Assembly (NCBI RefSeq): GCF_006345805.1
Contig: NC_042999.1
Span: forward strand, 72,106,001 to 72,170,000
DNA from: Octopus sinensis
Lineage: Eukaryota
Length of the DNA: 64,000 nt
Direction: 5' to 3'
Made by a program: the position numbers and the translations under genes. Shown here in pieces: positions 38,725-64,000 of the stretch; positions within the stretch are counted from its first letter, which is position 1; the number at the start of each line of letters is the position of its first letter. A model generated the notes under the pieces. The model was not told the DNA's origin, ran no database searches, and saw only the letters and a list, made by a program, of their open reading frames with translations.

Positions 38725-38950
38725 TAAAGCCCATAATTCTTTTCTACTCCAGGCACAAGGCCCGAAATTTGGGGGGAGATGGCCAGTCGATTAGATTGAC
38801 TCAGTTCGCAACTGGTACATAATTTATTGACCCCTAAAAGATGAAAGACAAGGTCAACATCGGCGAAATTTGAACTCAGAAAGTAAAGACAGGGGAAACC
38901 GCTAAGCATTTAGCTCAGCGTGCTAACGTTTCTGCCAGCTCACCGCTTCC
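38725..38950 (-). mobile_element. Family-1 SINE; further minus-strand copies at about 45975-46190, 46310-46480 (long-tail variant) and 47100-47300
   Basis: Same motifs as the 1743-2566 copies. Confidence 0.8.
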
Positions 38951-38976
38951 CAGTTAAAATATAAGTTAAAACACAT

Positions 38977-39540
38977 AATTGTATACGTATATACTGACAG
39001 GGATTTCAATCACTCGAAGTCACCGATCGAAAATTCATTATACCGACAGGTCAGTTTCAGCAATATTCGCCGTCTCATCAATAAGGTCTGGCTCGACTTC
39101 TGTGGATTCCGGACTTAATTCTCTGTCAGTATATGTTTTCACCATAAAAATCTATGGATGATTTAGCGAATTGCAATTGTATGTACATAAAATTAATATC
39201 GACAGCAATGTGCAATATTTTCTATAATTTTCACTAAATATGAAACACGTACATTGCTAGAAGTAAGAGCTAAAATGCTCTATTTCTCTAGTCAAAGCAC
39301 ATAATTGTATACATATATGTATAGTGACAGGGACTATAATCGCCTGAAAACACCCATCGAAAATTCACTATAATGACCGGTCAGTTTTGGCAATTTTTGC
39401 TACCTCATCAGTAAAGATTGGTTCGATTTCGGCAGATTCCGGACTTAATTCTGTTTCAGTATATATGTTTTCACCACAAAAATATATGTATGATTACGGA
39501 ATCGCTAATGTGTATACAGAAAATTGATATAGGCAACAGA
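38977..39540 (-). repeat. Diverged direct duplication (about 38977-39210 / 39302-39540) with decayed coding signature
   Basis: Shared GATTCCGGACTTAATTCT and ATCGAAAATTCA; minus frames TDRELSPESTEVEPDLIDETANIAETD / TETELSPESAEIEPIFTDEVAKIAKTD. Confidence 0.75.
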
Positions 39541-39789
39541 AATCCAGAAATCCTGAGAAGAATGTTTCTATAAGGAACGTGAAGATTAAGAATTCCAAGC
39601 TAAAAATAATGTAGGAAGCTGTGATGGTCATGTATATCTCCACAGGAACCAAAACAATGCGACTGAAATGAAATAGAAGCAGTTAAAATGTAAATATTCA
39701 TCAATGGTGTATTGTATACATACATATGTGTGTATATAGCTAGCCATAGTTTCTACATCAGACATACAAGAATGTATCTAGCTAGCTGC

Positions 39790-40551
39790 AAATGCGAGCT
39801 AGAGAAATAATATTCTTAAGATTATAAACCCGGAAAAATACAAAGCAAGTTATTACACTTGGAAAATTTGAGGACAACTTATTACATCTGGTAAAGTACA
39901 TAACAAGAAAAGTTTTGCTTAAAATATTGCAGCTAAGGATAAAATTTCAAATAAAATATTTAGATTTAGAAAATATCTTCTATTAAAGCTAAACTTTTTT
40001 TTACAAATTATTACTTCTAATGGTTATTTGTTACTTCTATTAAAAATTTTAAATAACTCAAAATATTTTTTATGCATTTTAAAACAATTCATTTTTAAAA
40101 TTATTAATTAATAATTAGAAATTTGAAAATAGGTTACAAAAATAATAGTAGTATATAAATAATACAATAAATAGAATAATACAAAAATTAGTTATATGTT
40201 ACAGTAAAATCTATTTATCACAAATTCACAGTAAACTTTGCTTAATGAATTTGCTACTTTGCATACAACTTTAGCTATATTGGTATCACTGGTTCTCATT
40301 TATTATTCTAGTGTGTCAATATTTTAAGAAAATAATGGTATCATTTTTAATTATAATGTTAGTTTGTAAATTAAAATCGAATAATTTTTAATCTTCAAAT
40401 TTTATCCTTAGCATTATTTTAAGTAAAGATTTTCTTGTTCTGTACTTTACCATATGTAATAAGTTGTCCTGAATTTTTCCAAGTGTAATAACTTGCTCTG
40501 TATTTTTCCAGGTTTATAATCTTAAAAATATTATTTCTCTTGCTCGCATTT
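39790..40551. mobile_element. Foldback/MITE-like element with ~160-bp inverted arms (39790-39950 / 40394-40551)
   Basis: AAATGCGAGCTAGAGAAATAATATT vs AATATTATTTCTCTTGCTCGCATTT; arms built from ~29-bp subrepeats (AAGTTATTACAC.TGGAAAA). Confidence 0.75.
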
Positions 40552-41289: not shown

Positions 41290-43900
41290 CCGTAGTTGAA
41301 CGCTACGTTTCGACCAAAGATTGGTCCAGGCCATGTTTAACTTAATAGCACCACCTCAAAGGGTGAACTAAATCCGTTTTAAGTCAAGTTTTGTGGTATT
41401 GTGGTTCATTCAAGTTGAGTGAGTTGTATCCAGATATAGGTGGCTTATCCGGTATTCCTTGAATAAATTTATCCAGATTCCGTTTAAAAGTGATGGGATC
41501 CTTTTCGTCTTTGATCTCTTTCGGGACAATATTAAATAAGGCAGGGCCTGTTGATGAAAAGAAATTGTGTTGCAGTGTGTTTAAATGTTGTGATCCTGAA
41601 TTGGGTAGTGAACGTATAGCCTGTGGTCCTAGCCTTGGATGAATTTTGAAGCTAATGCCGAGGACGCTTGTGCAATGCTGGTGGTATATTCTCCACATAG
41701 TGCAAATGATGTATCGCTCATGGTGGCGCTGGAGAGAATAGAGTTTCCTTTAAGGCGGTGCCAATACTCGAGATCAGTCATGCTCTTAATTCTTTTAGTG
41801 AATGATCTCTGGGGTGATTTGATTTTCGAGATGTTTTGTTTTGTATGGGTAGACCCCAGGGGCAGTAGTATTCGAGGTGTGGCCTTACAAAGGAGGAGAA
41901 AAGAGGAATGATGACACTTTGTTCTCTGGACCGGAAGGTTCTTAGGATCCATGAGCTTATCCTACGAGCTATAACGACCTTATTGTTGGTGTGGGCACTT
42001 CATTTGAGTTTGTTATCAACAATTACTCCTAGGTCTCTGATGTTATTAGATGCTATGAGCGGTTCCCCTGAAGGAAGGGAATGTGGCTGTTTTAGCATAA
42101 TATTTCTTCCAAAATGCATCAGATCAAATTTTTCCTCGTTTAGTTGCATTTTGTTTTTGTCTGCCCATTGATTCACAACATGTAGGTCCGATTGGAGCTG
42201 TGTTCAGTCTTCTTCATTGATAATTTTCTGGAGCTTAGCGTCATCAGCGAATATTTTCACTTTGCTGTGTTTTATGACGCTGGAGAGGTCGTTTATATAA
42301 ACTATAAAGAGGAGTGGGTCCAAAACAGTCTCCTGAGGGACACCACTGGTGACTTTTACTGGGCTTGAGTGGACTCCACCGATCACAACATGTGGTGCTC
42401 TGTTCTCCAGAAAATACTCAATCCAGTGTAGAGGTTTTCCACGGATTCCAACATTTGACAATTTTGATAGTAGAATGTTACGGTCAACTCTGTCGAACGC
42501 TTTACTAAAGACAAGACATATGACATCAAAGCACGAAGCTGAACATAAGGCTTTAAGGATATCATTGATGTGATGTAAGAGCTGTGTTAGACAGTCCCTG
42601 TTGCAGCGATTGGATTTCACCACCATCTCAAACAATTTAATGACAAGGGACGTGAGTGAGATTGGGCGATAATTGACTGCGAGGGATCTGTTTCCCTGTT
42701 TAAAAACCGGGATGCCATGCTGAGATAAGAGCTGTTTCGGTATACAACCTGTGTCTAAAGAATTTCTCCAGAGGTTGGTCAGAGGGACTGCAAGTTGGTG
42801 TCTACATTCCTTCAGGAGACTAACGGAGAATCTATCAGGGCCTACAGCAGAACAGTATTTGATCTCATTTATTGCTGCTATGATGTCTGAAGCAATAAAG
42901 GCTATGCCCAGCTTATACTTCGGGAATCGACGTCGTTCACATTCCTCAAGTCAATATCAGTGGGATCACTAAAGACAGAGCATTATTGTTTCTGCAGTAC
43001 TTTTGCTATTTCGTTAGCATCGTATTGGAGAATGCCGTTATCATTGATCAATGGACCAACGGGTGAGACAGCAGCCCTATGCTTAGTTGCATGTGAATAG
43101 AACATGTTTGGCTTCTGTTTGATTTTATTGATTACCCACTGTTCCTCTGCAGCTTTTTTGATTTTCAATGCAGGATTTGATGTTGATCTGCAGATGACGT
43201 TTTTCCAACTCCAGCCTTTTCATTGTTGTTGAATGAGGATGCTACATGTGGGAGTATTTTAATTCGTTGATTTTTTAGAAATTATGTCTTTTGATGAGCC
43301 TGATGAGTGTTCTTTTCTCTCTAGGGAGCCTGTTTTTGTTTGTGCTGGTGGATTTCATAGTAGCGTGTTTTAAGCATGTATAGATGACAATATCCTCAAA
43401 GCGCTGCCATGTGATTTCAATGTCAGTGGAACTGAGAGCAAAGGACCAGTCGATAAAGGACAGATCCTTTCTGATGATTGCTCCCGCGTGTGCTTTGTGT
43501 AAGTTTATGTTGTCAAACAAGTGCAGTAGAGTGGGATTAGCTGGTTTGGTTTTGATATACCGGAAATTAAAATTACAGAGTATCATGTGGTCCAAGAGGA
43601 GAAGTTTTTCAACTGAAATATTGTGGATGGAGCTAGAGTAGTTTGTTAATATTAGCTCAAAGGTCGTTTTATTCTTTTTTGTTGGTTCGAGCACTAGCTG
43701 TCCTCGAACAATTAGATTGAAGAGTAATTCTGCAGCTGATTTGTCTGGTGTGGTGCAGTTGTCTAACTTCTGGGTATGTGTGGGCCAGTTTATATAAGGG
43801 AGGTTAAAATCACCCATCACCAGTATGTTTCCAGAGTTGTGTTTTTCAAGGAGGGCTTGATTTTGTTGAGGTATTCTTCAAAGCACTTTAGAGTTGCTTA
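41290..43900 (-). mobile_element. Degraded CR1-group LINE ORF2 (endonuclease C-terminus, RT, C-terminal domain)
   Basis: MGDFNLPYINW (43275-43820), SKAFDRVD...SGVPQETVLDPLLFIVYINDL...FADDAKL (42204-42635), GPALFN...FKRNLDKFI (41384-41698); many frameshifts. Confidence 0.92.
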
Positions 43901-46509: not shown

Positions 46510-47021
46510 TACCTGGCAGTGGCTCTCATGGCTTCTGATCTTAACTGATTGGAAGTGTTATCAAGTACATTGTTTTGGCTTGTCAGTTGTTTGACCTTAA
46601 CCAGTTGACCGTGTCCCTTAGTTGCTGACGATATGTGCATCTCTGATCATGAACAGAAGTAATGGGGGAGCATCCATCATAGCCGTGTGTTGAAAGGAAT
46701 TCTTAGAGGTTTGGATAATTCACCTTTGGAAACATGAGTGGTTCGTTCAACTTCCTTAAACCATCCTTATTCAGAGACCTTTTGAGCGGGATGGGCTACT
46801 CGACCAGAAGAAAATTCTAACTGGGCTCCACCTGCAAGGTCATGCGCTGTTTATCTTCATATGAGATCACCATGTCGCGCACATGTGCTTGTGATGCATG
46901 TGCCTAGTGTACCCTTATCAGACGGGTAGTCATGATGGGTATACTGGGCTTCGTATATTTTATCCCAGTGTCACTCTGATGGCATACACTGCTCTCTCAC
47001 TCAACAACAATAATAATAATC

Positions 47022-47078
<57 letters not shown>

Positions 47079-47105
47079 TTAATAATAATAACAACAACAA
47101 TAATA
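46510..47105 (+). mobile_element. Interspersed repeat ending in an (AAT)n tail, probably a retroposon 3' end
   Basis: ~490 bp of higher-GC sequence ending CACTGCTCTCTCACTCAA followed by a long AAT/AAC run; family not identified. Confidence 0.45.
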
Positions 47106-48183: not shown

Positions 48184-48305
48184 AAGAATGTATTTTGAAT
48201 AAATGCAGTATGCATATACAGCCACACACACACACACACACAACACACACACACACACACAACACATGTATGTATGCAAACATGCGCACATTATATATAT
48301 ATATA

Positions 48306-48580
48306 TCTTTATATATTTAAAACTGAGAATCTGTTTGTCTGTCTGTCTGTATGTCTGTGTGTTTCCCTAAAACTTGAGAACTACACAACCAATTTCATTC
48401 AAATTTTACACATGCCTTACTTAGGGTCCGGGGAGTGTCATCGGCAAAAGAAATGTTCAACTTCTTGTCTAGAGCGAGCCCATAGCAATATCATATCTTC
48501 TCCACTATTTCAGTATTACGTGTTAAAAGTGAAACAAAAACGTTTGTTCTCTATTTTATGTCAGATACTTTCACTTTAAC
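48306..48580 (+). mobile_element. 5' part of a non-autonomous Helitron-type element, 3' CTAG end not seen
   Basis: A|TCTTTATATATTTAAAA start, (GTCT)n, CCAATTTCATTCAAATTTTACACA block, same architecture as the 5840-6224 element; no hairpin-CTAG|T end before 48843. Confidence 0.6.
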
Positions 48581-48842
48581 AAAAAATAATAATAACAATT
48601 GAATTATATATAGTAAGTAATAATTAAAATCAATAAAGTAACATGAACAAAAGTAAAAATAGCAATTGGTTAAAATTGCATCAATGATTTGAACTTGAAT
48701 AAGTGGTTTCACATAATGGGAATAAATTAAAAATAAAATTAACGTGCAGAAAAGGAATAGTCCAGATGGATAATAAAAAATTAAATTAAAGAAAAGACTA
48801 TTGTCTATAAAGTATACAATGTAGAGAAAAAGGAAATTCGAA

Positions 48843-50601
48843 CAGCGTGTCGGAAATTTACCCACGTGTGTTGTTATCTGTGATTAGACGTTGAAATTTT
48901 GTTGTGTAAAGTGATTAATATCGCGCAAGGCATTTGCCTCCACGTTTGGAAACCTTCTGAAGAAGGTGAATTGACCCTCTAGTCATGGCGACTTACGCGG
49001 GGGTCACGGGAAAGAATAATAATGATTCGGCAATAATCGTGAAGGATGTTTTCTTTGAGAAAAGTAAAATCAAAGAATATGAAAAGCTATTCAAAAGGGA
49101 GGGTGATAGCGTGAAGCTAATCCCCCCCGCGAAGCAAAGGAGGACAAGGAAAACAAAACTGTAACGTATAGAACCCAGGACAAAAGTACAAAGAAACTGG
49201 CAAGAGTGGAGATAGCAGAGATCGAAAAATGTCTGGGAGACATAATGGAAAATCGACCTACGTGAGTAGAGGAAAAAAATTGGTACGGTGGAGGTGAGAT
49301 GTGCAACGGAAGAAATTGCAGCCTCACTGGCTACCACTGTTCTAAGAGCGGAAACATTTATAATGTGGCCCTCATACAAGGGAAGAAGAGGGGTCCGGGT
49401 TAAAATCCCGAATATACCCCCAGAGTAAAAACAGAATGGCTGGCAACAGCTATTCTAGGAGCAGCAGAAGAGGAAGTGGAGGTGGAATCCTTTAAGGAGT
49501 CCAACGCAGTAAATTGGAGAGGATATGGGGTAGAACTGTGTTTGATGGCCACAAAAGAGGACATTGAAAGGTTCCCCTATAGATAGAATCGAAGACGAGA
49601 AAACCCTCAGTGTAATTGTAGAGGAAGAAAGCCAAACGCTACTTGTGCGGGACAAGGGGGCACATTAAAAAAGAGTGCCCGTTATATGAATTCATGGCGG
49701 AGTATGAAAGGAAATGAAGAAAAGAAGAATACGGAAAGGAAAAGAAAACATAGAAAAGGAGACAAAACAACAAGAGAAAGGAAATAATAAGTCAACGAAG
49801 GAAAAAGAAATAAAAAAGAAAGAAAGAAATAACCAAACAAAACAGAGTCAGGAAAAGAAAAAGGAAAAGAACAACAGGAAAAAAACAAGAGAGAGAACAG
49901 AACCAAACGAAAAGAAAAGACGGCACACAAAAAGAAAAAGAAAAGGAACATAAAACACGAGAGAAAGAAGAACAGACAAGAACCAAAAAGACAAGAGAAG
50001 GAAGAAGAAGAGAAAAGAAGGCAAAAAGAGAGAAGAGAGAAAAACAAAGAGAGGAAACAAGGAAGAAATAAGCCCGAAAAGAAAAAAACGAGAAAACGTA
50101 GGACGGAAAAAGATTACTACAAGTTAATAACCTTCCATTCCAGCCCCGAAATGAAGGAATTGACATGTAGTATGGAGGGACATGTGTGGGTCAACAGGAT
50201 GACTGATCAGTGGCAGGAGACTGCTCTGATCCCCGAAGAAAGAGTCGCTGAGTTCCTCAGAGCAGCTGGAGAGAGTGTAATTTTTTACACGGGTGTTCGA
50301 GTGAAAGAGCGGCTGCCTGAGGGCTCAGTGATTGACTTTAGAGACTTGAAAAGTATTATGGAATACGTGTGAGATTGTGAGAGGAGAGAGAAAAAGAAGA
50401 GAAAAGAAAAAAAAAATTGTGAACTATAGTGACGAAAATGTACCTCTCGATTCCGGGGATCGAGTGGGCATTTGCATCTCATTGTAAATTCTTTCATTTG
50501 TCATTTTTATTTTTCCCTTCTTGTCATTTCGCTTTCTTATTTTAAGTTCCCCGATTGTATTGTCCCTCTCTATGTTCGCCCCTTGTGGGTAGTAATAAAA
50601 T
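48843..50601 (+). mobile_element. ORF1-only non-LTR element, family A, unit A1 (1759 bp)
   Basis: Starts CAGCGTGTCGGAAA; ATG 48985, stop 50372; ends GTGGGTAGTAATAAAAT; several homopolymer frameshifts. Confidence 0.9.
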
Positions 50602-52363
50602 CAGCGTGTCGGAAATTTACCCACGTGTGTTGTTATCTGTGATTAGACGTTGAAATTTTGTTGTGTAAAGTGATTAATATCGCGCAAGGCATTTGCCTCC
50701 ACGTTTGGAAACCTTCTGAAGAAGGTGAATTGACCCTCTAGTCATGGCGACTTACGCGGGGGTCACGGGAAAGAATAAATGATTCGGCAATAATCGTGAA
50801 GGATGTTTTCTTTGAGAAAAGTAAAATCAAAGAATATGAAAAGCTATTCAAAAGGGAGGGTGATAGCGTGAAGCTAATCCCCCCCGCGAAAGCAAAGGAG
50901 GACAAGGAAAACAAAACTGTAACGTATAGAACCCAGGACAAAAGTACAAAGAAACTGGCAAGAGTGAGATAGCAGAGATCGAAAAATGTCTGGGAGACAT
51001 AATGGATAAATCGACCTACGTGAGTAGAGGAAAAAATTTGGTACGGTGGAGGTGAGATGTGCAACGGAAGAAATTGCAGCCTCACTGGCTACCACTGTTC
51101 TAAGAGCGGAAACATTTATAATGTGGCCCTCATACAAGGGAAGAAGAGGGGTCCGGGTTAAAATCCCGAATATACCCCCAGAAGTAAAAACAGAATGGCT
51201 GGCAACAGCTATTCTAGGAGCAGCAGAAGAGGAAGTGGAGGTGGAATCCTTTAAGGAGTCCAACGCAGTAAATTGGAGAGGATATGGGGTAGAACTGTGT
51301 TTGATGGCCACAAAAGAGGACATTGAAAGGTTCCCCTATAGAATAGAAATCGAAGACGAGAAAACCCTCAGTGTAATTGTAGAGGGAAGAAAGCCAAACT
51401 GCTACTTGTGCGGGACAAGGGGGCACATTAAAAAAGAGTGCCCGTTATATGAATTCATGGCGGAGTATGAGAAGGAAAATGAAGAAAGAAGAATGGGAAA
51501 TGAAAAAGAAAACATAGAAAAGAGACAAAACAACAAGAGAAAGGAAATAATAAGTCAACGAAGGAAAAAGAAATAAAAGAAAAGAAAGAAATAGAACCAA
51601 AACAGAGTCAGGAAAAGAAAAAGGAAAAGAAACAACAGGAAAAAAACAAGAGAGAGAACAGAACCAAACGAAAAGAAAAGACGGCACACAAAAAGAAAAA
51701 GAAAAGGAACATAAAACACGAGAGAAAGAGAGAACAGACAAAGAACCAAAAAGACAAGAGAAGAGAAGAAAGAAAAGAAGGCAAAAAGAGAGAAAGAGAG
51801 AAACAAAGAGAGGAGAACAAGGAAGAAATAAGCCCGAAAAGAAAAACGAGAGAAAACGTAGGACGGAAACAAGATTACTACAAGTTAATAACCTTCCATT
51901 CCAGCCCCGAAATGAAGGAATTGACATGTAGTATGGAGGGACATGTGTGGGTCAACAGGATGACTGATCAGTGGCAGGAGACTGCTCTGATCCCCGAAGA
52001 AAGAGTCGCTGAGTTCCTCAGAGCAGCTGGAGAGAGTGTAATTTTTTACACGGGTGTTCGAGTGAAAGAGCGGCTGCCTGAGGGCTCAGTGATTGACTTT
52101 AGAGACTTGAAAAGTATTATGGAATACGTGTGAGATTGTGAGAGGAGAGAGAAAAAAGAAAAAAAAAATTGTGAACTATAGGTGACGAAAATGTAACCTC
52201 TCGATTCCGGGGATCGAGTGGGCATTTGCATCTCATTGTAAATATTCTTTCATTTGTCATTTTTATTTTTATTTTTTCCCTTCTTGTCATTTCGCTTTCT
52301 TATTTTAAGTTCCCCGATTGTATTGTCCCCTCTATGTTCGCCCCTTGTGGGTAGTAATAAAAT
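50602..52363 (+). mobile_element. Family A unit A2 (1762 bp)
   Basis: Same termini; ATG 50744, stop 52133. Confidence 0.9.
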
Positions 52364-54140
52364 CACGTGTCGGAAATTTACCCACGTGTGTTGTTATCTG
52401 TGATTAGACGTTGAAATTTTGTTGTGTAAAGTGATTAATATCGCGCAAGGCATTTGCCTCCACGTTTGGAAACCTTCTGAAGAAGGTGAATTGACCCTCT
52501 AGTCATGGCGACTTACGCGGGGGTCACGGGAAAGAATAATAATGATTCGGCAATAATCGTGAAGGATGTTTTCTTTGAGAAAAGTAAAATCAAAGAATAT
52601 GAAAAGCTATTCAAAAGGGAGGGTGATAGCGTGAAGCTAATCCCCCCCGCGAAAGCAAAGGAGGACAAGGAAAACAAAACTGTAACGTATAGAACCCAGG
52701 ACAAAAGTACAAAGAAACTGGCAAGAGTGGAGATAGCAGAGATCGAAAAATGTCTGGGAGACATAATGGAAAATCGACCTACGTGAGTAGAGGAAAAAAA
52801 TTTGGTACGGTGGAGGTGAGATGTGCAACGGAAGAAATTGCAGCCTCACTGGCTACCACTGTTCTAAGAGCGGAAACATTTATAATGTGGCCCTCATACA
52901 AGGGAAGAAGAGGGGTCCGGGTTAAAATCCCGAATATACCCCCAGAAGTAAAAACAGAATGGCTGGCAACAGCTATTCTAGGAGCAGCAGAAGAGGAAGT
53001 GGAGGTGGAATCCTTTAAGGAGTCCAACGCAGTAAATTGGAGAGATATGGGGTAGAACTGTGTTTGATGGCCACAAAAGAGGACATTGAAAGGTTCCCCT
53101 ATAGAATAGAAATCGAAGACGAGAAAACCCTCAGTGTAATTGTAGAGGGAAGAAAGCCAAACTGCTACTTGTGCGGGACAAGGGGGCACATTAAAAAAAG
53201 TGCCCGTTATATGAATTCATGGCGGAGTATGAGAAGGAAAATGAAGAAAGAAGAATACGGGAAATGAAAAAGAAAACATAGAAAAGGAGACAAAACAACA
53301 AGAGAAAGGAAATAATAAGTCAACGAAGGAAAAAGAAATAAAAGAAAAGAAAGAAATAGAACCAAAACAGAGTCAGGAAAAGAAAAAGGAAAAAGAACAA
53401 CAGGAAAAAAACAAGAGAGAGAACAGAACCAAACGAAAAGAAAAGACGGCACACAAAGAAAAAGAAAAGGAACATAAAACACGAGAGAAAGAGAGAACAG
53501 ACAAAGAACCAAAAAGACAAGAGAAGGAAGAAGAAAGAAAAGAAGGCAAAAAGAGAGAAAGAGAGAAACAAAGAGAGGAGAACAAGGAAGAAATAAGCCC
53601 GAAAAGAAAAACGAGAGAAAACGTAGGACGGAAACAAGATTACTACAAGTTAATAACCTTCCATTCCAGCCCCGAAATGAAGGAATTGACATGTAGTATG
53701 GAGGGACATGTGTGGGTCAACAGGATGACTGATCAGTGGCAGGAGACTGCTCTGATCCCCGAAGAAAGAGTCGCTGAGTTCCTCAGAGCAGCTGGAGAGA
53801 GTGTAATTTTTTACACGGGTGTTCGAGTGAAAGAGCGGCTGCCTGAGGGCTCAGTGATTGACTTTAGAGACTTGAAAAGTATTATGGAATACGTGTGAGA
53901 TTGTGAGAGGAGAGAGAAGAAAGAAGAGAAAAAAGAAAAAAAAAATTGTGAACTATAGTGACGAAAATGTAACCTCTCGATTCCGGGGATCGAGTGGGCA
54001 TTTGCATCTCATTGTAAATATTCTTTCATTTGTCATTTTTATTTTTATTTTTCCCTTCTTGTCATTTCGCTTTTATTTTATTTAAGTTCCCCGATTGTAT
54101 TGTCCCCTCTATGTTCGCCCCTTGTGGGTAGTAATAAAAT
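52364..54140 (+). mobile_element. Family A unit A3 (1777 bp)
   Basis: Same termini (5' motif lacks one G); ATG 52505, stop 53898. Confidence 0.9.
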
Positions 54141-55920
54141 CAGCGTGTCGGAAATTTACCCACGTGTGTTGTTATCTGTGATTAGACGTTGAAATTTTGT
54201 TGTGTAAAGTGATTAATATCGCGCAAGGCATTTGCCTCCACGTTTGGAAACCTTCTGAAGAAGGTGAATTGACCCTCTAGTCATGGCGACTTACGCGGGG
54301 GTCACGGGAAAGAATAATAATGATTCGGCAATAATCGTGAAGGATGTTTTCTTTGAGAAAAGTAAAATCAAAGAATATGAAAAGCTATTCAAAAGGGAGG
54401 GTGATAGCGTGAAGCTAATCCCCCCCGCGAAAGCAAAAGAGGACAAGGAAAACAAAACTGTAACGTATAGAACCCAGGACAAAAGTACAAAGAAACTGGC
54501 AAGAGTGGAGATAGCAGAGATCGAAAAATGTCTGGGAGACATAATGGATAAATCGACCTACGTGAGTAGAGAAAAAAATTTGGTACGGTGGAGGTGAGAT
54601 GTGCAACGGAAGAAATTGCAGCCTCACTGGCTACCACTGTTCTAAGAGCGGAAACATTTATAATGTGGCCCTCATACAAGGGAAGAAGAGGGGTCCGGGT
54701 TAAAATCCCGAATATACCCCCAGAAGTAAAAACAGAATGGCTGGCAACAGCTATTCTAGGAGCAGCAGAAGAGGAGTGGAGGTGGAATCCTTTAAGGAGT
54801 CCAACGCAGTAAATTGGAGAGGATATGGGGTAGAACTGTGTTTGATGGCCACAAAAGAGGACATTGAAAGGTTCCCCTATAGAATAGAAATCGAAGACGA
54901 GAAAACCCTCAGTGTAATTGTAGAGGGAAGAAAGCCAAACTGCTACTTGTGCGGGACAAGGGGGCACATTAAAAAAGAGTGCCCGTTATATGAATTCATG
55001 GCGGAGTATGAGAAGGAAAATGAAGAAAAGAAGAATACGGGAAATGAAAAAGAAAACATAGAAAAGGAGACAAAACAACAAGAGAAAGGAAATAATAAGT
55101 CAACGAAGGAAAAAGAAATAAAAGAAAAGAAAGAAATAGAACCAAAACAGAGTCAGGAAAAGAAAAAGGAAAAAGAAACAACAGGAAAAAAACAAGAGAG
55201 AGAACAGAACCAAACGAAAAGAAAAGACGGCACACAAAAAGAAAAGAGGAACATAAAACACGAGAGAAAGAGAGAACAGACAAAGAACCAAAAAGACAAG
55301 AGAAGGAAGAAGAAAGAAAAGAAGGCAAAAAGAGAGAAAGAGAGAAACAAAGAGAGGAGAACAAGAAGAAATAAGCCCGAAAAGAAAAACGAGAGAAAAC
55401 GTAGGACGGAAACAAGATTACTACAAGTTAATAACCTTCCATTCCAGCCCCGAAATGAAGGAATTGACATGTAGTATGGAGGGACATGTGTGGGTCAACA
55501 GGATGACTGATCAGTGGCAGGAGACTGCTCTGATCCCCGAAGAAAGAGTCGCTGAGTTCCTCAGAGCAGCTGGAGAGAGTGTAATTTTTTACACGGGTGT
55601 TCGAGTGAAAGAGCGGCTGCCTGAGGGCTCAGTGATTGACTTTAGAGACTTGAAAAGTATTATGGAATACGTGTGAGATTGTGAGAGGAGAGAGAAGAAA
55701 GAAGAGAAAAAAGAAAAAAAAAAAATTGTGAACTATAGGTGACGAAAATGTAACCTCTCGATTCCGGGGATCGAGTGGGCATTTGCATCTCATTGTAAAT
55801 ATTCTTTCATTTGTCATTTTTATTTTTATTTTTTCCCTTCTTGTCATTTCGCTTTCTTATTTTAAGTTCCCCGATTGTATTGTCCCCTCTATGTTCGCCC
55901 CTTGTGGGTAGTAATAAAAT
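54141..55920 (+). mobile_element. Family A unit A4 (1780 bp)
   Basis: Same termini; ATG 54283, stop 55676. Confidence 0.9.
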
Positions 55921-56062
55921 CAGCGTGTCGGAAATTTACCCACGTGTGTTGTTATCTGTGATTAGACGTTGAAATTTTGTTGTGTAAAGTGATTAATATC
56001 GCGCAAGGCATTTGCCTCCACGTTTGGAAACCTTCTGAAGAAGGTGAATTGACCCTCTAGTC

Positions 56063-57461
56063 ATGGCGACTTACGCGGGGGTCACGGGAAAGAATAATAA
56101 TGATTCGGCAATAATCGTGAAGGATGTTTTCTTTGAGAAAAGTAAAATCAAAGAATATGAAAAGCTATTCAAAAGGGAGGGTGATAGCGTGAAGCTAATC
56201 CCCCCCGCGAAAGCAAAGGAGGACAAGGAAAACAACTGTAACGTATAGAACCCAGGACAAAAGTACAAAGAAACTGGCAAGAGTGGAGATAGCAGAGATC
56301 GAAAAATGTCTGGGAGACATAATGGATAAATCGACCTACGTGAGTAGAGGAAAAAAATTTGGTACGGTGGAGGTGAGATGTGCAACGGAAGAAATTGCAG
56401 CCTCACTGGCTACCACTGTTCTAAGAGCGGAAACATTTATAATGTGGCCCTCATACAAGGGAAGAAGAGGGGTCCGGGTTAAAATCCCGAATATACCCCC
56501 AGAAGTAAAAACAGAATGGCTGGCAACAGCTATTCTAGGAGCAGCAGAAGAGGAAGTGGAGGTGGAATCCTTTAAGGAGTCCAACGCAGTAAATTGGAGA
56601 GGATATGGGGTAGAACTGTGTTTGATGGCCACAAAAGAGGACATTGAAAGGTTCCCCTATAGAATAGAAATCGAAGACGAGAAAACCCTCAGTGTAATTG
56701 TAGAGGGAAGAAAGCCAAACTGCTACTTGTGCGGGACAAGGGGGCACATTAAAAAAGAGTGCCCGTTATATGAATTCATGGCGGAGTATGAGAAGGAAAA
56801 TGAAGAAAAGAAGAATACGGGAAATGAAAAAGAAAACATAGAAAAGGAGACAAAACAACAAGAGAAAGGAAATAATAAGTCAACGAAGGAAAAAGAAATA
56901 AAAGAAAAGAAAAATAATGAACCAAAACAGAGTCAGGAAAAGAAAAAGGAAAAAGAAACAACAGGAAAAAAACAAGAGAGAGAACAGAACCAAACGAAAA
57001 GAAAAGACGGCACACAAAAAGAAAAAGAAAAGGAACATAAAACACGAGAGAAAGAGAGAACAGACAAAGAACCAAAAAGACAAGAGAAGGAAGAAGAAAG
57101 AAAAGAAGGCAAAAAGAGAGAAAGAGAGAAACAAAGAGAGGAGAACAAGGAAGAAATAAGCCCGAAAAGAAAAACGAGAGAAAACGTAGGACGGAAACAA
57201 GATTACTACAAGTTAATAACCTTCCATTCCAGCCCCGAAATGAAGGAATTGACATGTAGTATGGAGGGACATGTGTGGGTCAACAGGATGACTGATCAGT
57301 GGCAGGAGACTGCTCTGATCCCCGAAGAAAGAGTCGCTGAGTTCCTCAGAGCAGCTGGAGAGAGTGTAATTTTTTACACGGGTGTTCGAGTGAAAGAGCG
57401 GCTGCCTGAGGGCTCAGTGATTGACTTTAGAGACTTGAAAAGTATTATGGAATACGTGTGA
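56063..57461 (+). CDS. Gag-like ORF1 protein of family A (~466 aa after restoring a 2-nt deletion near 56233)
   Basis: MATYAGV N-terminus; RRM-like KFGTVEVRCATEEIAASL and VRVKIPNIPPEV; CX2CX4HX4C knuckle CYLCGTRGHIKKEC (56721-56762); K/E-rich linker; SPKRK; ~85-aa C-terminal domain. The 392-aa ORF 56283-57461 is open. Confidence 0.85.
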
Positions 57462-57535
57462 GATTGTGAGAGGAGAGAGAAGAAAGAAGAGAAAAAAGAA
57501 AAAAAAAATTGTGAACTATAGTGACGAAAATGTAA

Positions 57536-57560
57536 CCTCTCGATTCCGGGGATCGAGTGG
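57536..57560 (+). promoter_or_regulatory. Conserved 3' UTR stem-loop (in every A and B unit; B copy at 61268-61292)
   Basis: CC(T/G)CTCGAT-T(C/T)CGGGG-ATCGAG-TGG; the A/B differences keep or add wobble pairs. Confidence 0.6.
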
Positions 57561-57701
57561 GCATTTGCATCTCATTGTAAATATTCTTTCATTTGTCATT
57601 TTTATTTTTATTTTTTCCTTCTTGTCATTTCGCTTTCTTATTTTAAGTTCCCCGATTGTATTGTCCCCTCTATGTTCGCCCCTTGTGGGTAGTAAAAAAA
57701 T

Positions 57702-59483
57702 CAGCGTGTCGGAAATTTACCCACGTGTGTTGTTATCTGTGATTAGACGTTGAAATTTTGTTGTGTAAAGTGATTAATATCGCGCAGGCATTTGCCTCCA
57801 CGTTTGGAAACCTTCTGAAGAAGGTGAATTGACCCTCTAGTCATGGCGACTTACGCGGGGGTCACGGGAAAGAATAATAATGATTCGGCAATAATCGTGA
57901 AGGATGTTTTCTTTGAGAAAAGTAAAATCAAAGAATATGAAAAGCTATTCAAAAGGGAGGGTGATAGCGTGAAGCTAATCCCCCCCGCGAAAGCAAAGGA
58001 GGACAAGGAAAACAAAACTGTAACGTATAGAACCCAGGACAAAAGTACAAAGAAACTGGCAAGAGTGGAGATAGCAGAGATCGAAAAATGTCTGGGAGAC
58101 ATAATGGATAAATCGACCTACGTGAGTAGAGGAAAAAAATTTGGTACGGTGGAGGTGAGATGTGCAACGGAAGAAATTGCAGCCTCACTGGCTACCACTG
58201 TTCTAAGAGCGGAAACATTTATAATGTGGCCCTCATACAAGGGAAGAAGAGGGGTCCGGGTTAAAATCCCGAATATACCCCCAGAAGTAAAAACAGAATG
58301 GCTGGCAACAGCTATTCTATTCTAGGAGCAGCAGAAGAGGAAGTGGAGGTGGAATCCTTTAAGGAGTCCAACGCAGTAAATTGGAGAGGATATGGGGTAG
58401 AACTGTGTTTGATGGCCACAAAAGAGGACATTGAAAGGTTCCCCTATAGAATAGAAATCGAAGACGAGAAAACCCTCAGTGTAATTGTAGAGGGAAGAAA
58501 GCCAAACTGCTACTTGTGCGGGACAGGGGGCACATTAAAAAAGAGTGCCCGTTATATGAATTCATGGCGGAGTATGAGAAGGAAAATGAAGAAAAGAAGA
58601 ATACGGGAAGAAAAAGAAAACATAGAAAAGGAGACAAAACAACAAGAGAAAGGAATAATAAGTCACGAAGGAAAAATAAATAAAAGAAAAGAAAGAAATA
58701 GAACCAAAACAGAGTCAGGAAAAGAAAAAGGAAAAAGAAACAACAGGAAAAAAACAAGAGAGAGAACAGAACCAAACGAAAAGAAAAGACGGCACACAAA
58801 AAGAAAAAGAAAAGGAACATAAAACACGAGAGAAGAGAGAACAGACAAAGAACCAAAAAGACAAGAGAGAATAAAGAAAGAAAAGAAGGCAAAAAGAGAG
58901 AAAGAGAGAAACAAAGAGAGGAGAACAAGGAAGAAATAAGCCCGAAAAGAAAAACGAGAAAACGTAGGACGGAAACAAGATTACTACAAGTAATACCTTC
59001 CATTCCATCCAGCCCCGAAATGAAGGAATTGACATGTAGTATGGAGGGACATGTGTGGGTCAACAGGATGACTGATCAGTGGCAGGAGACTGCTCTGATC
59101 CCCGAAGAAAGAGTCGCTGAGTTCCTCAGAGCAGCTGGAGAGAGTGTAATTTTTTACACGGGTGTTCGAGTGAAAGAGCGGCTGCCTGAGGGCTCAGTGA
59201 TTGACTTTAGAGACTTGAAAAGTATTATGGAATACGTGTGAGATTGTGAGAGGAGAGAGAAGAAAGAAGAGAAAAAAGAAAAAAAAAATTGTGAACTATA
59301 GGTGACGAAAATGTAACCTCTCGATTCCGGGGATCGAGTGGGCATTTGCATCTCATTGTAAATATTCTTTCATTTGTCATTTTTATTTTTATTTTTTCCC
59401 TTCTTGTCATTTCGCTTTCTTATTTTAAGTTCCCCGATTGTATTGTCCCCTCTATGTTCGCCCCTTGTGGGTAGTAATAAAAT
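57702..59483 (+). mobile_element. Family A unit A6 (1782 bp)
   Basis: Same termini; ATG 57843, stop 59241. Confidence 0.9.
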
Positions 59484-61386
59484 CAGCGTGTCGGAAATCT
59501 ATCCACATGTGTTGTGAGTTATTTTGTATGTGAAAATTGAAAAAAAAACTGTTAAAAATTGTCAAAAAATTGAATCGCGCGAGGCGTTTGCCGCTACGTG
59601 TTTGAACCTTTTATAGAAGGTGTGTCGACCCTCAAGTCATGGAGACTTACGCGGGGGTTGCCACAACAAAAAGTGACGAGTCTCTTAGAATAAAAGAAGT
59701 GTTCTTTAGAAAAGAACAATTGAAGGAATACGAGAAGTTTGTCAAAAGGGAGGGTGACAGCGTGAAGCTGGTCCCGCCTGTGGAAACAATAGAAGAGAAA
59801 ATAACAGACGATAACGTATAGAACGCAAGATAGAAACACGAGAAAACTGGTGAGAGTGACGATTGAAGAAATAGAGAAATGTCTGGGGGACATCATGAAA
59901 AAAGCGACTTTTGTAGACAGAGGAAAGAAATATGGTACGGTGGAGGTGAGATGCGCAACAAAGGAAGTGGCGGCCTCATTGGCTTCCACTGTCCTGAAAG
60001 CGGAAAATTTCACCATGTGGCCGACGTATAAAGGAAGACGAGGGGTACGGGTAAGAGTCCCAAAGGTGCCCCCAAATATTAAAACAGAAATGCTGGTAAC
60101 AGCCATTATTGGGGCAGCAAAAGAGGAAGTAGAAATAGGGTCAATTAAGGAGACGAACGTTGTAAATTGGAAGGGATTCGGAGTCGAGTTTTGGCTGATG
60201 GCCACAATGGAAGACATCGAAAGATTTCCCTTCCAAATAGAAATAGAAAACGAGAAAACAATTAGTGTAATAGTGGAAGGCAGAAAACCGAATTGCTACC
60301 TGTGCGGTTCAAGAGGGCACATAAAAAAGGAATGTCCGCTGTATGAATTCACAGCGGAGCAAAAAGAGACACAAAGTGGAGAGAAGGAAAACGAACACGA
60401 AGGAAAGAACAGCGAAAACAAGGAAAAGGAAATAACGGAGAAACAACAAGAGAAGGGAAGTAACAGCGCACTGAAGGAAAATGAAAACAAAGGGAAGAAG
60501 ATAGTAGAAAGGAGCAAAATTCACAGGGTGCAGAAGTAGTGGAGAAGGAGCCAAGCAGCAAGAAGAAAGAAAAGGAAAGTACATTAAGGAAAGAGAAAAA
60601 GCAGAAAAGAACAAGAGAAGGAACAGAACCAAGAGAAAGGAAAGATGGTATGCAAAAAGGAAAAGAAACAACAGGAAAGGAACTTAAGGCACAGGGTAGA
60701 GAGACGGCAGACAAAGAGCCAAAAAGACAAGAGAAGGAAAAGAAAGAAGAGAAAGCAAAAAGAGAAAAGAGAGAAACCGAGGGAGGAGAAAAAAGGGAAG
60801 TAAGTCCTAAGAGAAAAACTAGAGAAAACGTAGGTACGAATAGAAAATTAAAATACTATGGAACGTTGATCCATCACAGGCACTGTGAGGAGATGGAAGA
60901 TTTAATAAGCGTAACAAACGGATATACGTGGGTCAGGATGGGCACCGAATGGAAAAAACAGGTGCACTCGTCCACGAGAACGACGCCGAGGCGTTCATCG
61001 AGGCAGCTGGCAGAACGTGTCAAAACATATGAAATGCCGACTTACAAGGTGGCCTCGAACGATGGAATTTACTCAGATTTGGTAGACATAATGAGTATAT
61101 ATAAAAGAAGGTATTGTGAAAACTTTTAATTGGAAATGATAAAAGAACTTTAATTCGGAAAAAAAAAAGAATGTTGAACTTTGTAAAACTTTTGGAATGT
61201 ATGTTGAAAATGTAAAAATGTTTTATTTGAAATATTGTTGACGAATAAAAATAATGACGAAATGTAACCGCTCGATTTCGGGGATCGAGTGGGCATTGCA
61301 CCACATTGTACAAACTTCATAATTCATTATTCATTTTCCCGATTGTATTGTCCCATCTATGTAGCCCCTAGTGGGTAATAATAAAA
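59484..61386 (+). mobile_element. ORF1-only non-LTR element, family B, unit B1 (1903 bp)
   Basis: Starts CAGCGTGTCGGAAATC; ends GTGGGTAATAATAAAA; diverged paralogue of A with no ORF2. Confidence 0.88.
59639..61104 (+). CDS. Gag-like ORF1 of family B (frameshifted as assembled)
   Basis: METYAGV..., KYGTVEVRCATKEV, CYLCGSRGHIKKEC, SPKRKTRENVG; the second read (61761-61910) gives ...AFIEAAG...YSDLVDIMEYI*. Confidence 0.8.
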
Positions 61387-61660
61387 CAAGCGTGTCGGAA
61401 TCAATTTTTTGCGTTATTGTGAGTTGATGTATTTTTGCTCTCGTACTGTTGTCTCTGTTATTGTGTACTGTTGGTCTGCCTGTTTGTCTTTGCTTGTTGT
61501 CGACTGACGAAGTCAGCCTTCGCGCGAACTTCGCGTTGGTGTTCCCCCTCAGTGGGGAGAACTACAATTGGTTTGGATTTACCAAGGCTTGTTTAGCCAT
61601 TTGTTCAAGATGGAGTCCCCCATCTCTTGTTCGCCCGTGACGAGCGAGGATGGTCCCGGC
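61387..61660 (+). mobile_element. 5' end of a family C element, cut by the gap
   Basis: CAAGCGTGTCGGAA start; near-identical to 62201-62482. Confidence 0.8.
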
Positions 61661-61760
61661 NNNNNNNNNNNNNNNNNNNNNNNNNNNNNNNNNNNNNNNN
61701 NNNNNNNNNNNNNNNNNNNNNNNNNNNNNNNNNNNNNNNNNNNNNNNNNNNNNNNNNNNN
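61661..61760. other. Assembly gap (100 N)
   Basis: Run of N. Confidence 1.
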
Positions 61761-62200
61761 ACAGGTGCACTCGTCCACGAGAACGACGCCGAGGCGTTCA
61801 TCGAGGCAGCTGGCAAGAACGTGTCAAAACATATGAAATGCCGACTTACAAGGTGGCCTCGAACGATGGAAGTTTACTCAGATTTGGTAGACATAATGGA
61901 GTATATATAAAGAAAAGGTATTGTGAAAACTTTAATTTGGAAATGATAAAAAGAACTTTAAATTCGGAAAAAAAAAAAGAAATGTTGAACTTTGTAAAAC
62001 TTTTGGAATGTATGTTGAAACTATAAAATGTTTTATTTGGAAAATATTGTTGACGAATAAAAAATAAATGACGAAATGTAACCGCTCGATTTCGGGGATC
62101 GAGTGGGCATTGCACCACATTGTACAAACTTCATAATTCATTATTCATTTTCCCGATTGTATTGTCCCATCTATGTAGCCCCTAGTGGGTAATAATAAAA
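61761..62200 (+). mobile_element. 3' part of family B (B2), possibly the same locus as 60959-61386
   Basis: Near-identical to the B1 3' end apart from small indels. Confidence 0.8.
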
Positions 62201-62430
62201 CAAGCGTGTCGGAAATCAATTTTTTGCGTTATTGGTGAGTTGATGTATTTTTGCTCTCGTACTGTTGTCTCTGTTATTGTGTACTGTTGGTCTGCCTGTT
62301 TTGTCTATTGTTGTCTGACTGACGAAGTCAGTCTTCGCGCGAAGACTTCGCGTTGGTGTTCCCCCCTCAGTGGGGGAGAACTACAATTGGTTTGGATTTA
62401 CCAAAGGCTTGTTAGGGCCATTTGTTCAAG

Positions 62431-63791
62431 ATGGAGTCCCCCATCTCTTGTTCGCCCGTGACGAGCGAGGATGAGTGCCCGGCGTTGTCGCCAAGAAAAA
62501 AAGAGGCGTTGTCGCCGAAGAAAAAAGAGGCGGCGTCGCCCAGGAGAGTGGAAGGACCAGTACCAGCATCGGCTCCAGCAGGGAAATTCGCTGAAGTGGC
62601 TGGGAGGAGGATCAAAGGGATAGATGTGGAAAGTTTTAAAAGATTTGCAGACTGTGTAGAGGGGGAGGGCACAGAGGTGACTGTGGCCACAAGCATACAA
62701 ATACATGACGATGTGGAAGGGGAAAGAATGATATATGGAACTTACGACACAGCGAGGGGAATGATCCAAAGAATCGAAGAGAAGATGGAGTTTTGTCTAG
62801 AACCTTTTATGGATAGAGTAACGTATATAAGCGGAGGAGAGAGGTGCGGCACGGTGGAGGTGCGTTTTGCTACGGAGGAGATGGCGAAGAAACTGTCGAT
62901 GGAGCCGATCAAAGCGGAAAGCATTGTCTTACTACCATTGTATAGAGGAAGGGGGACGTCGAGAATTTCAATGAACAACATACCGCCGGAGGCAGATGCT
63001 GAATGTCTGGTGGCTGCAGTGATGGTGGGTCTGGAGGAAGAAATAAACATCCTCCAGGCCACAGTGGAGGAGGAGGAGTTTTGGAAGGGGCGGAGAATAG
63101 TGATGGCCATTCGGGCGGAGGTGCAAACACTGGAAGAAGTTCCAGAAAAGGTAGAGATTGGTGAAGACGAGAAAGTGGCAGTTTTCGCGGAGGGCAGGAG
63201 GCCGAGGTGCTTCGGCTGCGGCAAGAAGGGTCATGTAAGGGCGGAATGCCAACCCAAACCCAAACCGCAGAAAGCACCTAAGCCAAAAGAGAGGGAGGAT
63301 AGTGTGTCGCCGGAAGCAGCGTCGGACGGCCCAGAGGGGAAGACTGAAGGTGTGGAGGTGACGGTGACAGCGGAGCCAGCGGCGGAGGAGGGAAGGAGCG
63401 AGGAAAAGATAAATGAGGAGGGGTGGGCGAAAATTACCGGAAAAAAAAAAGAAAAACGGAAACCACCCCTCCCAGAGTGGTTTTAATGGGGAAGGAGGAG
63501 TCAATGAACTCGTATATGGCCGTAAGGGCGGCAAATGGCAGACTCGGAAGCGTGTTGGCGGCTGTGGCCAGGGTGGAGAGGGTAGTGAGGAAGAACGACT
63601 TTGTAATTTGCAGAATGGGCCGGAGGGATTGCGGGCGGATGGAGTCAGAAATCTTCCATGACGTAGGCCCACTTAGATTGGATGTGACATCTCCACATAT
63701 ATTCGATGGCCTACGTCAGACTCCCCCGCGAGGCCCGGAAGAGGAGTTGGAAGAACAGGAGAGGACCGAACCACTGATGTGGGGTAAGTAA
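62431..63791 (+). CDS. ORF1 of family C (Gag-like, CCHC knuckle); one frameshift at the A10 run 63441-63450
   Basis: RCGTVEVRFATEEMA, RISMNNIPPE and EGRRPRCFGCGKKGHVRAEC (knuckle 63208-63249) align to A/B. The frame of 63423-63791 continues to a TAA overlapping the ORF2 ATG. Confidence 0.8.
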
Positions 63792-64000
63792 TGGATTGCA
63801 TTTGTGTTGGTTGTTTGAATGTGCGCGGCCTGGGAGCGGGCTGGAAGCAGGGTCGCTTCCTGCATGATATCAGGTCGCGTAATTTGGATGTTATTGTTGC
63901 TACAGAAACCCGGTTAGAGGGGCCAAGAGGTCTGCTCCCGCTGTTTGACGGCTACGAGAGTTTTTTCTCTCCTGGCAGTCCTACAGGCGGGAGTGGGGTG
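63791..64000 (+). CDS. ORF2 N-terminus: APE-type endonuclease (partial, 70 codons open)
   Basis: My translation: MDCICVGCLNVRGLGAGWKQGRFLHDIRSRNLDVIVATETRL...GGSGV, matching the L1/Tx1 endonuclease motifs NVRGL, D(I/V)..xET and GV. Confidence 0.88.
   Translation, partial: MDCICVGCLNVRGLGAGWKQGRFLHDIRSRNLDVIVATETRLEGPRGLLPLFDGYESFFSPGSPTGGSGV

Follow-up and report, generated by a model that had tools for sequence, protein, structure and literature searches.

Stacks of ORF2-less retrotransposons on a LINE in octopus genomes, probably built by serial insertion

A stretch of 64,000 nucleotides from Octopus sinensis (assembly GCF_006345805.1, contig NC_042999.1, positions 72,106,001 to 72,170,000 of the forward strand; hereafter, the window) ends in a head-to-tail array of related elements. 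At 48844-64000 it holds, all on the + strand, six near-identical 1.78-kb units of a family that we call A, one 1.9-kb unit of a second family, B, and the 5' 1.8 kb of a larger element, C. The array is probably a stack of non-LTR (long terminal repeat) retrotransposons formed by serial insertion: C is the autonomous member, a long interspersed nuclear element (LINE), and A and B are relatives that lack its second open reading frame (ORF2), joined at other loci by the families A*, E, F, F2 and G. As these relatives retain ORF1 only, they are referred to below as Gag-only units.

Repeat finding detected a period of 1759-1791 bp between 48.8 and 60.4 kb of the window. Motif mapping placed the ends of the six A units, each reading ...GGGTAGTAATAAAATC, at 50602, 52364, 54141, 55921, 57702 and 59484, and B-type ends (...GGGTAATAATAAAACA) at 61388 and 62202. 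The parts of the array, including the untranslated regions (UTRs) and a short sequence termed T that recurs between units, are the following:

48292-48843, + strand: repeat X, the 5' flank of the stack, ending ...TTCGAAC and preceded by a (TA)n run
48844-48857, + strand: first copy of T (AGCGTGTCGGAAAT), 14 nt
50603, 52365, 54142, 55922, 57703, 59485, 61389 and 62203, + strand: starts of the recurrences of T, some of them 1 nt shorter
48844-50602, + strand: A1, Gag-only unit consisting of T, 5' UTR, ORF1, 3' UTR and a AATAAAATC end
50603-52364, + strand: A2, Gag-only unit
52365-54141, + strand: A3, Gag-only unit
54142-55921, + strand: A4, Gag-only unit
55922-57702, + strand: A5, Gag-only unit
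57654-57702, + strand: A5 copy of the shared 3' terminus of about 47 nt, GATTGTATTGTCCC.TCTATGT..GCCCCT.GTGGGTA.TAATAAAAYM
57703-59484, + strand: A6, Gag-only unit
59485-61388, + strand: B, Gag-only unit of the second family; ORF1 at 59639-61129, split by frameshifts, with a CCHC knuckle; end ...AATAAAACA
61389-61660, + strand: 5' fragment of C, with T, 5' UTR and the first ~19 codons of ORF1, up to the gap
61661-61760, no strand: assembly gap, 100 N, with the same sequence on both flanks
61761-62202, + strand: 3' fragment of B, a duplicate of 60958-61388
62203-64000, + strand: C, L1/Tx1-type LINE, cut by the window end; T and 5' UTR at 62203-62430, ORF1 at 62431-63486, ORF2 (with an apurinic/apyrimidinic-type endonuclease, APE) from 63791

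The first-pass annotation had counted six A units, one B unit and one C element on the same strand, and both the repeat period and the mapping of unit ends agree with that count. It had also described the units as lacking any spacer DNA between them. They are indeed arranged head to tail, yet the 14-nt T stands at each junction.

Sequence to the left of the gap (60958-61660) is found again to its right (61761-62483), and consists of about 430 nt of the B 3' part, the junction, and 270-280 nt of the C 5' part; the two flanks (about 700 and 720 bases) differ mainly by indels of 1-2 nt and by one short, poorly aligned stretch. Because the same sequence occurs on both sides, the letters across the gap are not continuous, and an ORF called across the Ns (61568-62026) is therefore meaningless. 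Two readings fit the duplication: an unmerged overlap between contigs, with A6-B-C as the true order, or a real second B-C repeat, in which case about 6.4 kb is missing.

When the six A copies were aligned, their differences were almost all private indels of 1-2 nt; 56 of the 91 indel columns fell in homopolymers, and most apparent substitutions adjoined indels in low-complexity stretches. This pattern looks like long-read assembly noise, not divergence. The reading frame is broken in single A copies of the window, and their majority consensus contains a 142-nt 5' UTR, one intact ORF of 466 aa and a 3' UTR of about 240 nt. The longest ORF of the window (56283-57461, 392 aa) lies in A5, where a 2-nt deletion breaks the frame of the full ORF1, whose ATG is near 56064.

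The coding content of the units was examined with Pfam. A CCHC knuckle was detected in the ORF1 of A, B and C of the window; A and B showed no endonuclease or reverse transcriptase (RT) domain, zf-CCHC being their only Pfam match, as the first-pass annotation had anticipated. Gag-only units are 1.65-2.0 kb long with a single ORF each, and a tblastn search with ORF2 gave no match inside those of the O. vulgaris loci described below. The ORF1 products of A and C are homologous (37% identity over 155 aa, E 4e-37); no similarity was detected between their C-terminal domains. A model of the A ORF1 product predicted by AlphaFold has a beta-alpha-beta-beta-alpha-beta arrangement, a topology like that of an RNA recognition motif (RRM), plus an ordered C-terminal domain, at low confidence (predicted local distance difference test, pLDDT, 51). 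Searching with this model, Foldseek returned no match at E <= 0.001; the weak matches were mostly to RRMs, the best at E 6e-3.

The tail of the C ORF1 runs on in another frame to 63791, with a frameshift at an A-run near 63443, and in the window its stop codon and the start codon of ORF2 overlap as TAATG (63789-63793). Such a stop-start overlap is reminiscent of the translational coupling known in the LINE SART1. In an O. vulgaris copy of C (locus L003) the two ORFs are separated by 9 nt, unlike the overlap in the window. Only the first 70 residues of ORF2 are visible in the window, and 68 of them are identical to the start of the L003 ORF2 (hand count), in line with the first-pass reading of C as a homologous ORF1 followed by an APE-type ORF2. 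That annotation had also left the intactness of ORF2 to be checked beyond the window end, and the L003 copy turned out to be intact: 1129 aa, with Exo_endo_phos (23-225), RVT_1 (509-750) and zf-RVT (969-1021) domains. Two full-length copies of C were measured (L002 and L003; 5216-5254 bp). An LTR-type or Penelope-type element was considered and is excluded by the APE-RT ORF2 of C.

Human L1 ORF2p is the best solved relative of the L003 ORF2 (E 1e-64), and the sole named neighbour is a coral 'Transposon TX1 149 kDa protein' (31% identity). In a 2026 repeat annotation of O. vulgaris, 13 recently active L1-Tx1 families are reported, with no mention of Gag-only units or arrays (PMC13282606). C can thus be loosely described as an autonomous LINE of the L1/Tx1 group, the Tx1 label being taken from the named neighbour and the reported families. 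The first-pass term 'Tx1-like' stands in this loose sense.

Homologues of the A5 ORF1 were found only in Octopus, on eight chromosomes of O. vulgaris and as one protein of O. bimaculoides. Ten O. vulgaris loci were fetched from GCA_951406725.2, and the parts of the window were mapped onto them. All ten, on nine chromosomes, carry stacks:

L001, OX597814: X, eight A, C
L002, OX597820: at least seven A, C, D
L003, OX597816: X, A, C, D
L004, OX597830: X, F, A', B* (an A 5' UTR fused to B), C, D
L005, OX597833: X, E, A', B, C
L006, OX597815: SINE (short interspersed nuclear element) head, F, A*, rest of the SINE
L007, OX597818, between haemocyanin genes: mixed stack, with Gag-only units on both sides of a second C-like LINE
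L008, OX597816, second site: X, four A, C, D
L009, OX597820, second site: X, two B, C, D2
L010, OX597821: X, B, C, D2

At least five Gag-only families besides A and B (A*, E, F, F2 and G) occur in these loci. Hence, the two families named in the first-pass annotation are confirmed as such, and the number of Gag-only families overall is larger. None of the stacks is telomeric: all ten loci lie tens of Mb inside their chromosomes, one of them at 64 Mb in a chromosome of 226 Mb. The window A units are 98-99% identical to O. vulgaris copies, and none of the fetched loci is identical to the window.

The idea that the window is orthologous to L001 was dropped, as a 424-bp upstream match between them is a common interspersed repeat. 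An interspersed repeat at 46574-47088 of the window has copies in L001, L005, L006 and L007, in both orientations, and gives a false impression of synteny between the window and L001. Other, unrelated LINEs have left fragments of ORF2 in the window: the C-terminal part of an RT at 25930-26631 (+ strand) and part of an APE at 43275-43820 (- strand). At L007, the mixed stack (1-9345 and 30612-39929) sits between two O. vulgaris haemocyanin genes, and the annotated Gag gene model there, which spans 20 kb, is probably mis-joined.

The nature of T was revealed by comparison among loci. The 13-18 nt that separate the 3' end of a unit from the 5' UTR of its neighbour are the same across families within a locus and differ between loci:

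Window, AGCGTGTCGGAAAT, 14 nt: before A, B and C
L005, ATTCCAGTCTTCAT: before E, A', B and C
L003, ACATGGCTCCAAG: before A and C; ACATGGAGGAAAG before D
L001, ACGTGTCGGAAAT: eight times; ACATGGAGGAAAT before C

The stack of L006 interrupts a SINE, and the 18-nt T found there (AGAAACGTYAGCACGCCG) belongs to that SINE; it occurs to the left of the insertions, between them and to their right. Elsewhere in the same locus lies an uninterrupted copy of the SINE, an empty target. As T is part of the SINE target, it is a target-site duplication, and its presence at every junction means that the units were inserted successively at the same position, with re-duplication of the target each time.

The order of insertion can also be read. 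A substitution-only tree of 24 A units is ladder-like, with the same subfamilies at different loci, as would be expected for successive subfamilies of one master lineage. Relevant observations within loci can be listed as follows: (i) in L001 the mismatch to the youngest A consensus increases from 0.009 to 0.048 from 5' to 3' (rho 0.95, p 3e-4); (ii) in L002 it increases from 0.005 to 0.020 in the same direction (rho 0.96, p 5e-4); (iii) it also rises from 5' to 3' in L008 (rho 0.8, n=4); (iv) T variants shift stepwise, from ancestral beside C and D to derived at the 5' edge; (v) at the one informative site of L006, the left copy of T is the one that was re-duplicated. The age order and the steps in T indicate that stacks grow on their 5' side, at the boundary between the left flank and T. 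That A units are older towards the 3' end argues for repeated insertion at one site and against local duplication.

The latter possibility deserves discussion, as a stretch of near-identical units can also be viewed as a satellite-like product of unequal exchange, in which one internally deleted LINE was tandemly duplicated in place and A and B were never mobile themselves. The six window copies of A, identical within noise and with the same junction, would fit such an origin, and expansion of tandem dimers of transposable elements by unequal exchange has been described (PMC5932611). The same A subfamilies are found, however, on different chromosomes, each locus with its own T; units within stacks are ordered by age and have not been homogenised; at L005 a single T is common to E, A', B and C; and the ORF1 of A is only 37% identical to that of C. 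As the sole cause, local duplication is largely refuted by these observations, and we consider it highly improbable, while admitting that local tandem duplication may have contributed to the six indistinguishable A copies of the window.

The flanks of the stacks were then compared. X is a repeat of about 550 bp whose copies (88-92% identity) lie directly 5' of the stacks of L001, L003, L004, L005, L008, L009 and L010, and D is a repeat of about 490 bp found on the 3' side of stacks. X is directly 5' in seven of the ten loci and in the window, and two further loci carry D or D2; nine of the ten loci, and the window, are thus flanked by X, D or both, a specificity that is not absolute (L007). 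The end of the dispersed repeat X is the preferred insertion site. A position in the head of a tRNA-like SINE (GGCGAGCTGGC^AGAATCGTTAGCACGCCG) adjoins an F-type 3' end at two independent loci (L006 and L008), is the duplicated target at L006, and looks like a second recurrent target site. Its copies are at the following positions:

L006: 8575-8610, 10264-10281, 12288-12305 and 20607-20624
L008: 5593

A likeness between two sites, the end of X in L005 and L009 (GAGCTAAC^A) and the SINE position (GAGCTGGC^A), hints at sequence recognition.

Because X and D flank most stacks, one may ask whether the recurrence reflects the copying of whole X-stack-C-D composites, by segmental duplication or by read-through retrotransposition, instead of independent insertions into a preferred site. 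The order of A, B and C is the same at several loci, which is in keeping with copying, and part of the flank has a shared history. D1 (L003 16300-16604; also present in L002, L004 and L008) is a fragment of about 300 nt that corresponds by homology to ORF1 codons ~88-190; the ancestral T (ACATGGAGGAAAG) stands before it, it has no 3' tail, and ATTCCAGTCTGTTAT and D2 come after it. The same odd structure at four loci indicates that at least the empty 'host', X-T0-D1-T5-D2, was itself copied. In L005, L009 and L010, X is joined to the stack via ATTCCAGTC... without D1. The existence of stacks with and without D1 indicates that the host repeat has two forms, both targeted at the X end.

Copying of the complete composites is another matter. 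Stack content is different at each locus, and T varies while X is conserved; the same X end serves the stacks of L005, L009 and L010, which lack D1; those of L006 and L007 sit in other targets. In addition, L003 and L004 share 98.1% identity over the 3' 3.6 kb of C, and the identity of X and D at those loci to their L003 counterparts is 92-93%; the L004 copy of C is a chimera of two C subfamilies. The closer match of the C 3' parts and the L004 chimera argue for independent insertions into pre-existing X-D copies. We therefore regard copying of composites as an unlikely source of the recurrence.

Serial insertion raises the question of whether the Gag-only units are functional lineages or debris of C. 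Between A subfamilies, the ratio of nonsynonymous to synonymous divergence (dN/dS) is 0.16-0.22 over the whole ORF1, with a proportion of synonymous differences (pS) of up to 0.27. Low ratios characterise the N-terminal, RRM-CCHC and Lys/Glu-rich parts, and ratios of 0.25-0.75 the C-terminal domain. On this evidence, purifying selection acts on the ORF1 of the A family. Copies with an intact ORF1 are known for A (467 aa), B (493 aa, in L005), E (473 aa) and F (453 aa).

Counts of intact copies are soft, as homopolymer length is unreliable in both assemblies. A poly-C run at codon ~46 of the A ORF1 (e.g., window 49124-49130) sets the reading frame: it is C7, in frame, in window copies, in units 1 and 5 of L001, in units 1 and 2 of L002 and in the A' of L004. 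Among 18 aligned O. vulgaris copies, 13 have C6, and the run in L005 is C13.

In a tree of the ORF1 core, a single clade unites A, A', A*, B, E, G1 and G2, with identities of at least 68% among its members and of 29-42% to C-type ORF1s; F and F2 are Gag-only lineages apart from it. Since the Gag-only ORF1s form clades of their own at such a distance from C, they are not recent deletion products of it. The O. bimaculoides protein belongs to the A/B/E clade, which indicates that the Gag-only lineage is old: its identity to the E ORF1 is 46%, from the first residue through the CCHC knuckle, compared with 35% to the C ORF1, in the core only.

Purifying selection admits a further explanation, namely domestication: the units would be host genes, a tandem family derived from gag and kept for a cellular function. 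The dN/dS values are compatible with it, and the units are annotated in O. vulgaris as anonymous protein-coding genes, with RefSeq-derived names in use for them. Selection on the master copies of an active element, however, explains the dN/dS equally well, and domestication accounts poorly for LINE termini, target-site duplications, a succession of subfamilies and many frame-broken copies, or for units stacked with a LINE at a repeat-specific target. We give domestication almost no credence.

The feature that ties the Gag-only units to C is found at their 3' ends. The last ~47 nt are kept in all 41 unit ends collected, from the A, B, C, E, F and G families. The full copies of C in O. vulgaris (5.2 kb) end ...GATTGTATTGTCCCATCTATGTTCGCCCCTTGTGGGTAATAATAAAACA, the same terminus as in A and B; the A/B and C versions are about 92% identical (45 of 49 positions, hand count). 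Upstream of this terminus, the 3' UTR of C is unrelated to that of A and B. All units collected end ...AATAAAAYM with T directly after, and a poly(A) tail is absent.

A 4-bp hairpin (GCCC/GGGT) lies within the terminus; its one compensatory change comes from the second C-like lineage. A second hairpin belongs to a near-invariant motif of the Gag-only 3' UTR, TGACGAAA(A)TGTAACCnCTCGATTyCGGGGATCGAGTGGGCATT, with a 6-bp stem and a 7-nt loop, which occurs in the window at 57517-57575, 61249-61307 and 62063-62121 and in every A, B or G unit of L001-L010. It is common to A, A', A*, B and G and missing from the C 3' UTR. Both structures are unproven, the terminal one having a single compensatory change and the A/B stem being invariant. 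A tentative interpretation is that the stem-loop may be a cis element of the Gag-only clade, for example a putative site for its own ORF1 protein. Rfam, used at a permissive threshold, gave no credible ribozyme or known RNA at the junctions.

SINE-like repeats at L008 5480-5592 and L006 1197-1256 have a tail homologous to the terminal ~45 nt of the LINE (..TGTCCCCTCTGTGT..CCCTTGTGGGTAmTAAAGAAAT). From this likeness, C-type LINEs may also be partners of abundant octopus SINEs.

A parasite/helper relationship, in which C supplies ORF2 and the Gag-only elements keep their own ORF1, had been proposed in the first-pass annotation. Two outcomes would have counted against it, an unrelated 3' terminus in C and a confinement of A and B to the window. 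What was found is a terminus of about 47 nt common to full C copies and Gag-only units, and ten further loci, each with its own T, together with an age order of units within stacks. Together with purifying selection on ORF1 and with Gag-only clades distinct from C, these results support the proposal, and we infer from the shared tail and the co-location that the C ORF2 protein mobilises A and B in trans.

Under such a model, a C-type ORF2 protein would nick the X end or the SINE site, recognise the ~47-nt terminus on an RNA and prime reverse transcription there, by analogy with LINE/SINE pairs that share a tail. Gag-only RNAs, each coated by its own ORF1 protein, would be reverse-transcribed by the C enzyme in trans. 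The left half of the target would survive each event, so that the site could be hit again. The sequences themselves show the outcome: integration leaves a target-site duplication of 13-18 bp, successive insertions fall exactly between the left flank and T, T is re-duplicated at each junction, and the stack grows in the 5' direction. The oldest member, usually C, is then the 3'-most, and the youngest A units are the 5'-most.

An enzyme from another autonomous LINE could do the same, the co-location of A and B with C then reflecting nothing but a shared target preference. C lacks the conserved hairpin of the A/B 3' UTR, and the tail variant of the second C-like element, C2, in L007 (..AGGTAATAAAGAAATAC) is close to the F tail (..GGGTAATAAAGAAATC), which suggests several partner pairs. 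The last ~47 nt of A and B are, however, some 92% identical to those of C; C has copies with an intact ORF2; and in about 250 kb of loci no LINE other than C was seen with the shared tail. The odds seem to us to be clearly against such an outside partner.

Several observations weigh against the combined model of serial insertion and mobilisation by C, or narrow it. The sample comprises ten loci only, all found via annotated ORF1 proteins. The window A copies are identical within assembly noise and have one T, so that unequal exchange after a single insertion could have multiplied them. Neither the heavy rewriting sometimes seen in the leftmost T nor the lack of a recognisable T 5' of the F unit in L004 is predicted by a simple target-site-duplication model. 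Most single ORFs are frame-broken in both assemblies, often at homopolymers, which makes the intactness of any given copy uncertain. The similarity of C to A and B in the 3' UTR is limited to the last ~47 nt and does not include their conserved hairpin; recognition could thus be more complex, or another partner could be involved. Finally, the RRM-like domain that would accompany the CCHC knuckle in the ORF1 of A, B and C, as in a type I ORF1 protein, is suggested by a low-confidence model of the A product and by weak fold matches.

The rewriting of T leads to a further consideration. As stacking goes on after T has been rewritten, the recognised feature would be the left flank or the resident element itself. 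A speculation, which we put forward tentatively and consider rather doubtful as a whole, is that at least seven Gag-only lineages (A, A*, B, E, F, F2 and G) have been under purifying selection since before the split of O. vulgaris and O. bimaculoides, and that their new copies home just upstream of the 5' end of a resident relative, regardless of the sequence of T. The result would be 'stratigraphic' stacks on a founder LINE, a resident-directed, internal analogue of telomere accretion in Drosophila.

Each ingredient of this system is known from other elements. HeT-A, at Drosophila telomeres, is a Gag-only non-LTR element that depends on its RT-encoding relatives TART and TAHRE. Like the octopus stacks, HeT-A, TART and TAHRE form mixed head-to-tail arrays in which new members are added 5' of the residents. 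The octopus stacks differ in that they are internal to chromosomes, have a target-site duplication and no oligo(A) at their junctions, lie at the end of a dispersed repeat, and bring several Gag-only families together. Telomeric tandems have been described alongside those of the site-specific non-LTR element R1, which are also head-to-tail, are split by identical short target duplications and have been explained, like tandems of some other elements, by 'double insertion' at one site (McGurk and Barbash 2018, PMC5932611). Octopus stacks share with R1 a tandem structure produced by repeated insertion at one site. Unlike R1, they hold up to four families per site, are ordered by age and grow mainly by successive insertion, not by unequal exchange of dimers; moreover, the duplicated target can be rewritten and stacking continues.

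Dependence on a full-length partner is also seen in HAL1, the mammalian half-L1, and in Dictyostelium TRE5-A.2, which keep ORF1 and the LINE ends and have no ORF2. The octopus Gag-only units have the same composition; in contrast with HAL1 and TRE5-A.2, their ORF1s are only 29-42% identical to that of the partner, several families are under selection, and they form ordered stacks. To our knowledge, HeT-A, HAL1 and TRE5-A.2 are among the few cases of Gag-only non-LTR elements that live off the RT of a partner.

Site-specific LINEs of the Tx1 clade include Tx1L, which inserts in Tx1D of Xenopus, and Keno, Kibi, Koshi and Mutsu; their target-site duplications are longish. C resembles them in its APE, RT, C-terminal zinc finger and CCHC ORF1, and in the use of a defined site inside another repeat, and it differs from L1 proper by the absence of a poly(A) tail. 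We know of no report of Gag-only satellite families or multi-family stacks for Tx1-clade LINEs, and none was found in the literature searched. As regards the tail, UnaL2 and UnaSINE1 of eel share only their terminal tens of nucleotides, and poly(A) is not required. Compared with the dependants in such LINE/SINE pairs, those of octopus are 1.7-1.9 kb long and are probably pol II-type (RNA polymerase II) units that encode a conserved protein.

Gag-only dependants, shared tails, site-specific Tx1 LINEs and R1 tandems with target-site duplications are therefore all precedents. Their combination, with several selected Gag-only families in age order on a LINE at a repeat-specific, chromosome-internal site, was not found described in the literature searched, for cephalopods or otherwise (coverage was incomplete and did not extend to Repbase or Dfam).

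The system has a bearing on several questions. Several lineages, each with a selected ORF1, amount to a natural test of the role of ORF1 in cis when ORF2 comes in trans. Stacks ordered by age are a record of insertion order, in which the succession of subfamilies and the re-use of targets can be read from sequence. They also bear on how tandems of transposable elements seed satellite-like arrays and, in a broader context, on the very repeat-rich genomes of cephalopods, in which L1-Tx1 elements have been reported to be recently active.

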